From the IMG/VR virus record IMGVR_UViG_3300025141_000020, positions 62,001-126,000 of that record: DNA of 64,000 nucleotides. One strand, written 5' to 3'. The position numbers and the translations under genes are program-made. The notes beneath the pieces are model-generated. The model made no database searches and was not told the origin of the DNA. It saw nothing but the letters and a program-made list of their open reading frames with translations. Shown here in pieces: positions 30,686 through 62,293 of this stretch (positions within the stretch are counted from its first letter, which is position 1; the number at the start of each line of letters is the position of its first letter).

Positions 30686-30901
30686 TTAGGATGAGGATTT
30701 CCTTTTGTTATTTGCTTGTTCTATTGCTTCATTTTTCTTATTAAACTCATCCGTCAAGAAATTAACATAAAATCTCCTCTCAAATGTAGGCATAACCAGT
30801 ATATCACTCCAAGGGATATGTAAGTGCCTCATAAGGTAGTAAAATTCTTGTAATAGGGCGTTCCTATATGCCGTAGAAAGGACGAAAAAACTCAATTCCA
30901 A
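30686..30901 (-). CDS. Tail assembly chaperone frameshift extension (GT-like)
   Basis: No ATG start; overlaps chaperone 3' end in +1 frame across G-TTT-TTT-C; ends just before tape measure. Confidence 0.65.
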   Translation of the reverse strand: MELSFFVLSTAYRNALLQEFYYLMRHLHIPWSDILVMPTFERRFYVNFLTDEFNKKNEAIEQANNKRKSSS

Positions 30902-31616
30902 AGGCTATTCTAGCGCCAATCTCCTGGTTGGATGGGGTCTTAACTTTAATGTTAAGGTCTAGTTCTGGGGCATTTTCTCTAACCACTTTTCTAATGGTTT
31001 GGGAATCTTTTATAGGCATAATCTGAATAGTCTGTGATAGTGTCATTGGGTCTCTAACACCGTCTATCTCTTTCACCACCATCTCTAACTGTTTTGTTAT
31101 ATAAGGGTTAATAGGGTGGTCTTTATAGGTCTCGTTAATTTTTTGTAAGGCTTTTTCTATTTTAGGTGAAATTAGTGTTAGCTTACATTTCTTTTTTGAT
31201 ATCTCTAAGTAATGGTCAAACTCACCTTTTTCATCTAATTCAACACCAACCTCTTTTGTTTTTAATACAGATAGGTCAATAGTTGTGTCGAACTCTTTAT
31301 CAGTTTTTGGGTCTTTAATTGTCACCTTATAGTCGGAACCAAAAGCTGTGTTACGTAAGAAAATTAATATGGCTTCTTTATCACAGTCAGCTAATTCATC
31401 TACACGTATATCTTTATCTAATATTTTTCTTTCTAATAAGCTATTAACTAAATTAATACTACCGACCATAGATGGTGTAGATAATAGATTCTCGTCAGAA
31501 GCATTTAGGTAAGTTACTTTAACACTCTTTTTATTTGTTGTATAAAAAACCCCTTGTGATGGTAAAGCTACCATATCATAAGGTAATATTGACTCTTGTG
31601 GTTGTTCTGTTTGCAT
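30864..31616 (-). CDS. Tail/baseplate assembly chaperone (gp26-like)
   Basis: LPSQGVFY, YLNASDENLLS, DKEAILIFLRNTAFG and C-terminal FGIEFFRP; between tube and tape measure. Confidence 0.75.
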   Translation of the reverse strand: MQTEQPQESILPYDMVALPSQGVFYTTNKKSVKVTYLNASDENLLSTPSMVGSINLVNSLLERKILDKDIRVDELADCDKEAILIFLRNTAFGSDYKVTIKDPKTDKEFDTTIDLSVLKTKEVGVELDEKGEFDHYLEISKKKCKLTLISPKIEKALQKINETYKDHPINPYITKQLEMVVKEIDGVRDPMTLSQTIQIMPIKDSQTIRKVVRENAPELDLNIKVKTPSNQEIGARIAFGIEFFRPFYGI

Positions 31617-31778: not shown

Positions 31779-32267
31779 TTAGTAAACCAAGATACATCTA
31801 TCTGGTCTTAAGGTAGCTGATATATTGGCTAAACCATCATCGCTATAACTTAAATCGTTAAAGTTAACGTCAGTTAAGAAAGCTCCTTGTAATATCCATT
31901 TTTCTACTACCACCCCTGTTGGGTCTAACAACTCTAAATCTATATTTTTCTTATATCCTGCGGCATAACCCATTCTACCTGTAACTGACTCTGAATGCAT
32001 TCTTACCCACTCCATAAGTGCTTGTGCTGCTGAAGGACCGATAGGGTCTCTAAAGGTTACGTTGATTGTTCCCCAAACAAATCTACCAGCAACATATGTT
32101 GATGTGTTTAGAAAAGGTACCTCTACGGAGTTTATAGTAATTTGTGGTCTAGATGTACTTTCCACATACCATTCATTGATGCCTAAAGAAGAGTCAAATC
32201 TTAGGATAAACCTATTTTTCTTTTTAGGTTCGTAAGGTACGGGCATTTTCATTAACAAGTCAGCCAT
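31779..32267 (-). CDS. Tail tube protein (gp19-like)
   Basis: YEPKKKNRFILRF, RPQITINSVEVPFLN, WGTINVTFRD, YKKNIDLELLDPTG..VEKWILQGAF. Confidence 0.88.
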   Translation of the reverse strand: MADLLMKMPVPYEPKKKNRFILRFDSSLGINEWYVESTSRPQITINSVEVPFLNTSTYVAGRFVWGTINVTFRDPIGPSAAQALMEWVRMHSESVTGRMGYAAGYKKNIDLELLDPTGVVVEKWILQGAFLTDVNFNDLSYSDDGLANISATLRPDRCILVY

Positions 32268-32358: not shown

Positions 32359-33219
32359 TTAACCTTTCTTAATTATAATTTTTCCATATCCACCTTCAGA
32401 TGTGTCATAAACAATAAATGACATTTCTGGAAACTCGTATTGTAATTCATCTTTAATATAGTTAACCATAGCATTTACATTACCTAAATCATCATCACTA
32501 AACCCTATAGATAATTTATTATATTTGGAATTAACCATTTTATTTGCCCCGTTCATAACTTTCCTAACGTAACTTCTAAAAGCTAATTTTTTATTTTCTT
32601 CTGGGTTTATAGCTGAACTATGTTCTATACCAAATTTATCAGCAAACTCAATAGATGATACTGGGTGGTATTCTATATTATCTAAATATACCTCTAAAGT
32701 CTTGTCTGGTGTTAAATACTTAGTTTCTGGATAGGCTTGTTGTATGTTGGTTAACATATCAGACAATTCATCTTCATTAAAAGTTCTAGCTATAATTAAG
32801 TCCATACCCTTTCTCAATGTTATTGGTTGGTGTCCTCTGGCTGTTATAATAGATATTGGGTTTGCATATATTAAAGCTTCTTTAAACTTATCGAAGGACG
32901 GTGCAAAAGATTCCTTTTCTATTGCTTTTTTTAAATCTTTAATGAATTCCTTTTCTTCTCTAAAATTATAAAATGCGTCATCATCTAATTTATAATTTTT
33001 ATCATTTCTTACTTTTGAGAATTCTTCTGTGGATACTTGTGTTGCCTTCCATTTACCATTTTCGTATTTAACCATTCTAATTAGTGTGGGCATATTAACT
33101 ATGTTGTCGTCCCAATCAAAAGAATAGGCTCTAAGTGTATTATCCACCTCATTGTTTTGTTCTAATAGTTTAGATAACCATTTAACTTGTCTTTCACTAA
33201 TTATTATTTTTTGTTTCAT
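32359..33219 (-). CDS. HAD-superfamily phosphatase-like protein
   Basis: Motif I FDWDDN, motif II ITARG, motif III NKK, motif IV GFSDDD. Confidence 0.7.
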   Translation of the reverse strand: MKQKIIISERQVKWLSKLLEQNNEVDNTLRAYSFDWDDNIVNMPTLIRMVKYENGKWKATQVSTEEFSKVRNDKNYKLDDDAFYNFREEKEFIKDLKKAIEKESFAPSFDKFKEALIYANPISIITARGHQPITLRKGMDLIIARTFNEDELSDMLTNIQQAYPETKYLTPDKTLEVYLDNIEYHPVSSIEFADKFGIEHSSAINPEENKKLAFRSYVRKVMNGANKMVNSKYNKLSIGFSDDDLGNVNAMVNYIKDELQYEFPEMSFIVYDTSEGGYGKIIIKKG

Positions 33220-33648: not shown

Positions 33649-34476
33649 TTAAATTCTTGATATTGGTTTAATAACCTGTTTCATTTTTTTGATGTCTTCC
33701 TGAATCAGTCTTTCCCTTTTATCTTCTTTGGTTTCTTCTATATTCTCAGAATCATGAATATGGTCATAATGCATGTCATCTTCTAAATCGTCTATATGAT
33801 ATTCACTGCCCCCATCATGTTTTAAGTCATAAAGTTCTTTGTCGTCATGACCTTCGTCTCTACCGTAATTCATCGCTTCATCATGACCAGAATCTTCTTT
33901 AACTTCTTTAGAAGCTTTTTTCATTGACTCTTTCTTGTCTCCATCACCATCAAGGTCTAAAAAATCCGGTTTTACACCTTCTTCTAATTCTGGATAAGGT
34001 AAATCGTCAGAAACATCTTCATAACTTCTAGGGGTTCTTTGTGATGAACCTGACCCTATTAATTCTGCTGTATAAGTCATAAAGTTTCCTAATTTAGTGA
34101 TTGAGTTTGCTAACTTTCTTCTAGTATCACTATCCTTAATCATGTCATAAGCTTTCTTGATACCATTAATAACGTTTTCTATACCTTCACCTGCGGCAAC
34201 CCCAGGATTTCTATTGTACATTCCTTGTTCCATGATAGTATCAGTATAGTCCTTAATGTTTAAATCTAGATTTTCTTTAACGATAGCTTTACGAATCAGT
34301 CTAAATGCATCACTAATTACAGATTCTACCATAACAGGATTATTAACTTTACCCAACAACCTTTCTAGTTGTTCCTCACTAATAATCACATTCTGTTTTT
34401 TTCCTTCAGTAAAAGTTTTTTTACCACTTAATTGTGACTGGATTGTTTCACTTAACGTTTTTTTATTAAATTTCAT
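33649..34476 (-). CDS. Hypothetical protein with DxDxDG loop and His/Asp-rich tail
   Basis: PDFLDLDGDGDKKESMKKA; HDDKELYDLKHD...HYDHIHD. Confidence 0.7.
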   Translation of the reverse strand: MKFNKKTLSETIQSQLSGKKTFTEGKKQNVIISEEQLERLLGKVNNPVMVESVISDAFRLIRKAIVKENLDLNIKDYTDTIMEQGMYNRNPGVAAGEGIENVINGIKKAYDMIKDSDTRRKLANSITKLGNFMTYTAELIGSGSSQRTPRSYEDVSDDLPYPELEEGVKPDFLDLDGDGDKKESMKKASKEVKEDSGHDEAMNYGRDEGHDDKELYDLKHDGGSEYHIDDLEDDMHYDHIHDSENIEETKEDKRERLIQEDIKKMKQVIKPISRI

Positions 34477-61441: not shown

Positions 61442-62293
61442 ATGAGGAATGTCTTCTTAATAAATGTTAGTGAAAATCCGTTAGTGGTAAAAAATCAAAT
61501 AGATAATATTAAAAAATTTGTATCTAACGATGAGGTTATTGTGCTACACATATCTAATACAACTAAAGATAATTTTATTAACGACTCTAATACCCATAAT
61601 TTAGATTTCTATAATATGGAATCTGATGGTATATATGTAAACCCAACAAATATACCTACTCAACGAGGTCATTTATTGACTGATGCTTTCTTATCTAGTT
61701 TCGATTTTATAAAAGGTAGGGTGGACTTTGGTAAAGTGGTTTTAAACAGCAGTAATCAGTTATTTTTCAAACATGGGTTTAAAGAACATTTAGATAATTA
61801 TAGAGTTGGTTTATATAAAATAGAAACATTGGGTCCGTCTGGAATGTTCCCAAATGCTAAGCCGAAACCATTTATTACTAAAATATTTGGTGAGGAGAGA
61901 AAGAGTTATTGGTCATACCATGAGGGTAGTTTTTTTGATAAGGGTGATTTTGAGACTATTAGTGATTTAATCAAAGACAATAATTTTGACGGAACTAGTG
62001 AGGAACAAACAATACCCACTTTATTCCATAATCTATATAATGATAAAGACCTTAAAATCTCCCCAACATCAGTGTGGATGAATCTTTATTTGTCACTTGA
62101 TGAGATTTCAGCTATGAAACTTATATTAGATTCTGAATATGAGAAATTACGTGGATATGTACGTTACGGTTTAGCTGATAGTACTAACACCCCTCTTAGA
62201 GATGTTATGTTGTCTGGTGATTTTTTATTTGGGATTAAACGGGTTGGTAGGACTATGGATTGTCCAACCAGGTCATTCATTAACGGCTTATGA
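61442..62293 (+). CDS. Hypothetical protein in glycosylation operon, 283 aa
   Basis: Long ORF in the operon; no motif recognised with confidence. Confidence 0.6.
   Translation: MRNVFLINVSENPLVVKNQIDNIKKFVSNDEVIVLHISNTTKDNFINDSNTHNLDFYNMESDGIYVNPTNIPTQRGHLLTDAFLSSFDFIKGRVDFGKVVLNSSNQLFFKHGFKEHLDNYRVGLYKIETLGPSGMFPNAKPKPFITKIFGEERKSYWSYHEGSFFDKGDFETISDLIKDNNFDGTSEEQTIPTLFHNLYNDKDLKISPTSVWMNLYLSLDEISAMKLILDSEYEKLRGYVRYGLADSTNTPLRDVMLSGDFLFGIKRVGRTMDCPTRSFINGL

Follow-up and report, generated by a model that had tools for sequence, protein, structure and literature searches.

The stretch of DNA considered here, called the window, comprises 64,000 nucleotides (nt) of the IMG/VR virus record IMGVR_UViG_3300025141_000020 (positions 62,001 to 126,000). 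On its minus strand it carries an open reading frame (ORF1) for a T4 gp26-family protein, the 3′ end of which overlaps a second ORF in another frame. A preliminary description had taken the pair for a tail assembly chaperone with a probable programmed +1 (or −2) frameshift at a run of six T residues (T6). In our judgement it is very likely that some form of programmed recoding joins the two frames into a fusion of a short “G” form with a “T” extension. The frameshift call is supported by an invariant run, conservation of both coding frames, a switch in codon periodicity, relatives in which the second ORF lacks a start codon, and in-frame fusions in distant relatives.

The junction and its conservation in relatives

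ORF1 ends in GGA ATT GAG TTT TTT CGT CCT TTC TAC GGC ATA TAG, and the overlapping frame runs (TAG) CCT TTG GAA TTG AGT TTT TTC GTC CTT TCT ACG GCA TAT AGG, with the final codons of ORF1 and T6 lying exactly where they had first been placed. Relative to ORF1 the second ORF is in register +1 (equivalently −2), and a TGA shortly before T6 closes the −1 frame, in agreement with the original assignment to +1 or −2 and not −1; +1 is the better supported of the two. The overlapping frame stays open for 68 codons, from AGT at 30892 to TAA at 30686-30688 (about 65 had been estimated). Its first ATG is codon 21, so that no ATG lies near its start, as had been noted, and TTG codons occur at 30901 and 30895. 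From its stop to the start (30661) of a 728-amino-acid (aa) gene there are 24 nt; the earlier placement just before a tape measure gene therefore holds as to position, the identity of that gene being putative. Across 146 long ORFs in the 210-kb genome, TTT_TTT_CGN is found in frame only once.

A protein-guided scan of viral contigs for relatives matched at least 573 stretches, from which 80 loci were returned (ORF1 identity 45–100%). Seventy-nine loci share GAR TTT TTT CGY CCY TTC TAY GG..TA TAR, with the ORF1 stop nine codons past the Glu codon (seven past the second TTT), and all 79 keep the +1 ORF open, for 48–69 codons; openness of the −1 frame is not conserved among them. Given the identical register in 79 related loci, the overlap arrangement is, on comparative grounds, far beyond chance. 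T6 is invariant in 63 of 64 distinct junctions, and some relatives have T7. Conservation of T6C and of both frames, suggested at the outset as a check, is present in the 79 loci over the whole identity range.

If the true gene were one continuous ORF, gene decay or an assembly indel at the homopolymer might imitate such a split, and deleting one T would indeed join the frames. However, the same T6 and split recur in 79 loci from different samples (the scan having matched at least 573 stretches); T6 is crossed without gaps or indel by contigs from four independent metagenome DNA runs, which bears on the read check called for earlier; and the ORF1 tail RPFYGI* is conserved at the protein level. 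ORF1 has 1171 homologues in the protein database, of which the best 120 (183–254 aa) align to the ORF1 part of the 309-aa fusion query only, with no continuous fusion ORF among them; the split between ORF1 and the +1 ORF thus appears to be maintained. The artefact explanation is effectively refuted, and we give it a negligible chance. The runs were checked as Logan contigs, RNA runs included, and contigs drop rare variants, so that rare RNA variants or transcript slippage are not visible in them.

In four marine metagenomes the summed k-mer depth over the ~40-nt junction block (window positions 30851-30904) reaches up to ~10x that of its flanks. Contigs end at this block, where assemblies fragment because it is near-identical in many co-occurring phages.

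Column entropy was computed on the 64 distinct junction sequences, with means averaged from the per-column table. Zero-frame wobble positions have a mean of 1.30 bits upstream, up to the base before T6, and of 0.44 in the 27-nt overlap. Past the ORF1 stop the periodicity tracks the +1 frame, with 1.35 at the wobble position versus 0.97 and 0.77 at positions 1 and 2. The junction block is invariant over ~35 nt in alignment A1, and residues 1–32 of the +1 product are well conserved, FFxLSTxYKKGQLDEILFLVKRGFSYGDIL being found in most lineages. Judged by these substitution patterns, coding selection acts on the +1 ORF, beginning with the overlap.

The +1 ORF could also be a separate small gene, started at TTG 30901 or 30895 or further downstream, with no fusion made. 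In 51 of the 64 relatives, and likewise in the window, the +1 frame does have a TTG or GTG at the site or ahead of it, which counts against recoding; GenBank annotators gave the homologous ORF of Microcystis phage Mel-JY01 a TTG start, and cyanophage gp51 is annotated as a gene of its own. Yet TTG 30901 and 30895 are not conserved and arise as by-products of how ORF1 encodes F-G-I/V-E. In 13 of the 64 distinct relatives a stop codon stands immediately before AGT/AAT TTT TTC in the +1 frame, produced by the synonymous ORF1 change GTT to GTA that turns the nearest TTG into TAG, and the ORF is retained in these lineages. An upstream ATG for the +1 ORF is present in 3 of 64 relatives, and three relatives (L046, L054 and L066) lack ATG, GTG and TTG throughout the +1 ORF yet conserve residues 1–32. 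No Shine-Dalgarno-like sequence is present, and T4 gp51, like the in-frame fusions of relatives, shows the domain to work when attached to a gp26-like domain. A separate gene is therefore highly improbable, and initiation at TTG 30901, which had been named as an outcome that would overturn the frameshift, is made unlikely by the stop codon that takes its place in 13 of 64 relatives. Because of that stop and the several relatives with no usable start, independent initiation cannot, as far as these alignments reach, be the conserved mechanism, and the +1 ORF must be reached by recoding.

Direction and mechanism of the proposed shift

The recoding is probably a +1 ribosomal slip at UUU_C. Most ribosomes would then make the 250-aa gp26-like protein, the “G” form, and a minority, having begun at the same start codon, would slip by +1 with tRNA-Phe on the second UUU of GAG_UUU_UUU_CGU, the tRNA re-pairing with UUC as the rare zero-frame CGU awaits decoding in the A site. 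The slipped ribosomes would yield a 309-aa fusion ending in a gp51-C-like “T” domain of 65 residues (junction ...GIEFF-VLSTAYR...; junction peptide IAFGIEFFVLSTAYR, with two Phe). By analogy with lambda G/GT and with T4 gp26/gp51, hub assembly chaperones not found in the virion, the G and GT-like forms may act at a fixed ratio, assembling the tape measure and hub and starting the tube. We infer the slip direction, the slip site, the efficiency and the binding partners.

The direction is best judged from the variation of the site. The +1 layout is found in distant Mel-JY01 (AAC TTT TTT TGG), in the distant loci L113 and L114 (TTT TTT TGG), in Flavobacterium phage immuto (AGC TTT CTT TGG) and in the 484-kb phage LR756508 (AAC TTT CTA), and within the family the site varies to TTT TTT CTC in L037 and (GAA) TTC TTT CGC in L072. 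All that these +1-layout lineages have in common is a TTT in frame with a pyrimidine after it. We favour +1 over −2 because TTT_Y alone is shared and a slip from UUU to UUY explains all cases. UUU_Ynn is +1-prone in bacteria, and tail chaperone shifts are recorded as −1, −2 (Mu) or +1 (PMC5009743). At the influenza PA-X +1 site, UCC_UUU_CGU (PMC5009743), CGU is rare (PMC8310308). In this genome the frequencies per 1000 codons are 2.5 for CGT and 0.2 for CGC (CGY 2.7) and 20.4 for AGA, and CGT and CGC together make up 8.5% of Arg codons. No stable RNA structure is predicted downstream of T6 (z = +1.74), which fits a simple shift-prone site. A candidate upstream Shine-Dalgarno-like stimulator was dropped: the G-rich stretch in relatives encodes Gly and is absent from the window.

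A −2 shift on U6, in which tRNA-Phe moves back two bases onto UUU, would add a Phe (...EFFFVLS..., peptide IAFGIEFFFVLSTAYR). It is the mode reported for the phage Mu tail chaperone pair (PMC5009743), and in this family the full T6 (T7 in some relatives) is invariant. In several relatives −2 fails because re-pairing is impossible there: the run is too short in immuto (AGC TTT CTT TGG), LR756508 (AAC TTT CTA) and L072 (GAA TTC TTT CGC), all of the same layout, and a +1 slip at UUU_Y covers every case with one mechanism. We therefore regard −2 as unlikely.

RNA polymerase slippage on the A6/T6 template is the other route, whereby some mRNAs with one U fewer (or two more) would encode the fusion in one frame. 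A homopolymer lies exactly at the junction, and slippage is an established way into another frame (PMC5009743). Against it, distant relatives have TTTCTTT or TTTCTA, with no such homopolymer, and the contigs contain no length variants, though contigs drop rare variants. Productive polymerase slippage is known from runs of about 7–9 bases or more, and six bases are short by comparison. Slippage strikes us as quite improbable.

A +1 slip has difficulties of its own. The entire T6 is invariant in the family, not merely TTT_C, and this suits −2 or polymerase slippage as well; the +1-frame A-site codon GTC is also rare (2.9 per 1000); and the “hungry codon” argument fails for relatives with TGG, CTT or CTA. 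Hence, given the strict conservation of T6 in the family, −2 slip and transcriptional slippage stay live rivals of the +1 slip.

The encoded proteins and their neighbours

ORF1 scores 34.4 bits with Pfam PF12322 (T4_baseplate), above the cut-off of 24.5, and 33.8 bits when the genome was searched; it also matches PHROG 150, and its listed homologues all carry PF12322. Its AlphaFold (AF2) model has a predicted local distance difference test (pLDDT) score of 85, and a Foldseek search of the model against BFVD returned 58 viral models at E<=1e-3 named baseplate hub, hub assembly chaperone or gp26, among them Aeromonas phage 25 gp26 and “baseplate hub assembly chaperone” proteins. Foldseek searches of the model against PDB and AFDB Swiss-Prot and a PDB sequence search gave no match, and no tail assembly chaperone (TAC) family was matched in Pfam and PHROG scans of ORF1. 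In hhalign, profiles compared with the single T4 gp26 and gp51 sequences gave no significant score, with suggestive alignments. By family membership ORF1 is a T4 gp26-family protein (PF12322). The protein first labelled a “tail assembly chaperone” thus belongs to the T4 gp26 family, and neither in sequence nor in fold does it show a relation to lambda G or P2 E.

The +1 ORF matched a single family, PHROG 634 (“baseplate hub assembly catalyst”, gp51), with E 1.7e-3 for the window, E 5e-4 in the six-frame genome search and matches in 6 of 20 relatives’ +1 ORFs (best E ~4e-5). Aligned by hhalign with 120 cyanophage Gp51_C sequences, a broad alignment of +1 products gave a probability of 78% and E 1.8e-5, and the alignment is colinear from the Phe-Phe onward. 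Homology of the +1 extension to the gp51 C-terminal domain is probable, not proven. PF28602 (Gp51_C) gave no match in the Pfam scans, even for P-SSM2 gp51, and the family is apparently not in the scanned Pfam copy. DUF6760 (Pfam) has weak colinear matches, below cut-off (best E 0.005), in 8 of 24 T-domain sequences (alignment A4) and in the protein P0252, and may be a wider family for the extension. An antisense 47-aa ORF in a P-SSM2 tail gene (L109:8549-8689, minus strand) scored E 5e-5 against a widened T-domain hidden Markov model (HMM); this is presumably a compositional chance hit and urges caution with weak E-values from a short K/E/Y-rich profile.

When the +1 products were used in a full HMM search, most of the matches were short ORFs, but true single-frame fusions were among them. 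P0252 (331 aa) has PF12322 followed by ...NFFGLPDNYRENLMDEIF... in one frame. P0204 (293 aa) is encoded directly downstream of a distinct G-like paralogue of 252 aa, and the cluster also holds a 162-aa gene upstream, perhaps for the tube, and a 743-aa gene downstream, perhaps for the tape measure. These fusions imply that the extension works attached to a gp26-like domain, and the position of P0204 beside a separate G paralogue implies that lineages without recoding keep a short and a long gene, as T4 does. On an uncultured phage contig (L112:116-5697) lie a 162-aa gene (possibly the tube), a 252-aa G-like gene, a 293-aa G-like paralogue with in-frame T domain, a 297-aa gene and a 743-aa gene (possibly the tape measure); by its gene content, the contig has the system in the form of two tandem genes. 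Short “in-frame fusions” from cyanophages (P0293, P0299 and similar) were not counted, since at least one of them stems from a long-read assembly with gp26 in pieces and they may be indel artefacts. In a 387-kb long-read (pilon-polished) contig (L117:1875-2779), gp26 is in three pieces that run in frame into gp51. This split probably reflects homopolymer indel errors, and short “PF12322+Gp51_C” database proteins are probably unreliable as natural fusions.

The source record is a 210.6-kb IMG/VR virus with a G+C content of 33.6% and an estimated completeness of 66%; the record has 0 tRNA genes. Every gene in the chaperone region is on the minus strand, in the order sheath, two unassigned genes, tube, ORF1, +1 ORF and 728-aa gene (Table 1). 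A tube gene lies upstream of ORF1 in 74 related loci, and the same order of tube, chaperone pair and tape-measure position is found in immuto, Mel-JY01 and L114. The 728-aa protein had no match in Pfam and PHROG scans, nothing was found by BLASTP against T4 gp29, and a weak BLASTP match (E 0.03) links it to the annotated tape measure protein of immuto; the assignment as a putative tape measure protein follows from position, size and this match. Megablast of the region against the phage collection gave no match. The locus probably represents the chaperone gene pair for tail tube and tape measure in a marine jumbo myovirus. At 1131 aa the sheath protein is of unusual length, its sheath domains being confined to the last ~300 residues, and one of the two genes between sheath and tube encodes a very acidic 275-aa protein.

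Table 1 Features of the chaperone region in the window.
Feature	Position	Strand	Basis or remark
ORF1, gp26-type chaperone (“G” form), 250 aa	30864..31616	-	PF12322, PHROG 150; C-terminus ...FGIEFFRPFYGI*
Proposed shift site GAG TTT TTT CGT	30882..30893	-	T6 = 30885-30890
Proposed P-site codon, second TTT	30885-30887		Re-pairing to TTC 30884-30886; zero-frame A-site CGT 30882-30884
Dual-coding overlap, ORF1 / +1 ORF	30864..30892	-	Wobble entropy, alignment A1
+1-frame ORF (“T” extension), 68 codons + stop	30686..30892	-	SFFVLSTAYRNALLQEFYYLMRHLHIPWSDILVMPTFERRFYVNFL...
Predicted +1 fusion product P0001, 309 aa	30689..31616	-	Inferred; ORF1 residues 1-244 then VLSTAYR..., TTTC being read once as F
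Putative tape measure protein, 728 aa	28475..30661	-	Position, size, weak BLASTP match
Tail tube protein, gp19-like	31779..32267	-	PHROG 4542, E 4.5e-32; directly upstream of ORF1
Gene without family assignment	32359-33219	-	Between sheath and tube
Gene without family assignment	33649-34476	-	Between sheath and tube
Tail sheath protein, 1131 aa	34547..37942	-	PHROG 23, E 8e-52; Pfam Phage_sheath_1C at cut-off

From the position between tube and tape measure genes and the homology to T4 hub assembly chaperones, we infer that the short form and the fusion may jointly chaperone the tape measure and hub and start tube polymerisation, like lambda G and GT. Several points weaken this interpretation. 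The gp51 link is remote (PHROG 634 at E 1e-3 to 4e-5, hhalign probability 78%); HMMs built from the +1 ORFs reached cyanophage gp51 ORFs only at E 0.02–0.07, and not T4 gp51; and the suggested role as a tape-measure chaperone draws on gene order and on T4 genetics from the literature. A complex prediction for the T extension and the tube protein scored 0.00 and gives no verdict, being evidence neither for nor against binding.

Comparison with T4, cyanophages and known recoded systems

A conserved frameshift in the tail chaperone genes is a textbook case of recoding in phages, and to our knowledge T4-type phages have been regarded as doing without it. In T4, PF12322 covers both gp26 (E 8e-65) and residues 1–201 of gp51 (E 4e-52), gp51 being composed of PF12322 (aa 1–201) and a phrog_634 C-terminus. 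Both proteins are hub assembly chaperones and gp51 is not in the particle (Leiman et al., PMC3004832); their mechanism is still unknown (PMC3004832). The window resembles T4 in that ORF1 belongs to PF12322 and the +1 extension matches a PHROG built on the gp51 C-terminus. It differs in that T4 has two divergently transcribed paralogues, without a frameshift and away from the sheath and tube genes, whereas here one gene with recoding stands in the canonical tube, chaperone and tape measure order. On this evidence T4 genes 26 and 51 look like G and GT forms kept as two divergent genes. Gene 26 of T4 also has an annotated internal in-frame product, 26′ (genes 26, 26′ and 51 at L090:3803-5229).

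The cyanophages P-SSM2 (L109:3496-4391) and S-PM2 (L104:2071-2400), both Kyanoviridae, and the pelagiphage HTVC008M (L110:5367-6256) share with the window a single PF12322 gene, an overlapping Gp51_C ORF, a putative tape measure gene downstream and a shift that would fall on the same Phe-Phe codons. In these phages, in contrast, the second ORF lies in frame −1, and annotations treat it as a small gene in its own right. Their junctions, AGT TTT TTC GTA TAA in P-SSM2, TCT TTT TTC GCA TAA in S-PM2 and AGT TTT TTT TAA in HTVC008M, are classical −1 heptamers (U_UUU_UUY) just before the gp26 stop. GenBank starts “gp51” of the cyanophages and pelagiphage at an internal ATG, upstream of which the frame is open; HTVC008M has ~20 conserved codons ahead of any ATG. 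Each of the three looks like an unannotated −1 G/GT pair of the same protein family with the same Phe-Phe hinge.

Taken together, these cases tip us slightly towards a broader reading, in which the gp26/gp51 family makes short and long forms in three interchangeable ways, with a Phe-Phe hinge each time and switching between −1 and +1, and in which T4 gp26/gp51 are the missing G/GT counterpart. The +1 mode at UUU_Y would be used by this jumbo-phage clade, immuto, Mel-JY01 and the 484-kb phage, the −1 mode at U_UUU_UUY by the cyanophages and a pelagiphage, and the two-paralogue mode by T4 (26/51) and contig L112. If this is true, T4 gp26/gp51 would be the long-missing T4 counterpart of lambda G/GT, and evolution would have switched between −1 and +1 recoding at one homologous site. 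The locus and its relatives would provide a sequence bridge, with a gp26-like protein in the G position and a gp51 C-domain in the T position, the two parts joined by recoding in many phages and by gene fusion and duplication in T4.

Frameshifting in tail chaperones is already known as a kind, +1 and −2 variants included. What appears to be new is the protein family, gp26/gp51 instead of a gpG-like protein and with no detectable sequence or fold relation to it; the conservation of a UUU_CGY +1 site throughout a very large clade of marine phages; the implied equivalence of T4 26/51 to G/GT; and the finding of +1, −1 and two-gene solutions side by side within a single family. We found no literature linking gp26/gp51 with a frameshift or a tail assembly chaperone, in a search that covered few subscription journals. 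At least one GenBank record names a gp51 homologue “tape measure protein assembly chaperone”, and a Gp51_C family (PF28602) now exists in Pfam. There is also a practical consequence, given that annotation pipelines miss or shorten the +1 ORF. In immuto (L092:4995-5958) it is unannotated save for a 36-aa piece from an internal ATG, in Mel-JY01 (L091:5920-7000) it is annotated from a TTG inside ORF1, and elsewhere it is begun at an internal ATG or TTG. Cultured relatives (immuto, Mel-JY01 and the cyanophages) permit direct testing.

Among other recoded systems, phage Mu (−2) and the haloarchaeal myovirus HSTV-2 (+1) also have tail chaperone pairs with the second ORF in the +1 frame (PMC5009743); they differ in protein families and shift sites and are likened here by description, not by sequence. 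The bacterial UUU_Ynn sites (argI, Yersinia YopN-TyeA) and influenza A PA-X (UCC_UUU_CGU) share with the proposed site a P-site UUU followed by a pyrimidine, movement of tRNA-Phe to UUC, a rare A-site CGU and no need for a 3′ structure (PMC5009743; PMC8310308), but host system and gene are different and the E-site codon here is GAR, not UCC. With at least 573 matching viral stretches, the locus would add to PA-X a UUU_CGY +1 site from bacterial viruses, and one that is deeply conserved.

The closest likeness in layout is to lambda G/GT and P2 E/E+E′, which frameshift (Levin 1993; Xu, Hendrix and Duda 2004, as cited in PMC5009743) and which the preliminary description had seen mirrored here. 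That parallel does not extend to the site or to homology: the shift here would be +1 and not −1 on an X_XXY_YYZ heptamer, the most frequent type among such systems, and ORF1 is larger (250 aa) and has no sequence or fold similarity to gpG-type chaperones (Pfam TAC, PDB). It does hold for the gene order and for the mode of entry, in that two overlapping ORFs lie between the tube and tape measure genes, a second ORF without a start of its own is entered at a slippery run near the end of the first, and a short and a C-terminally extended form would result.

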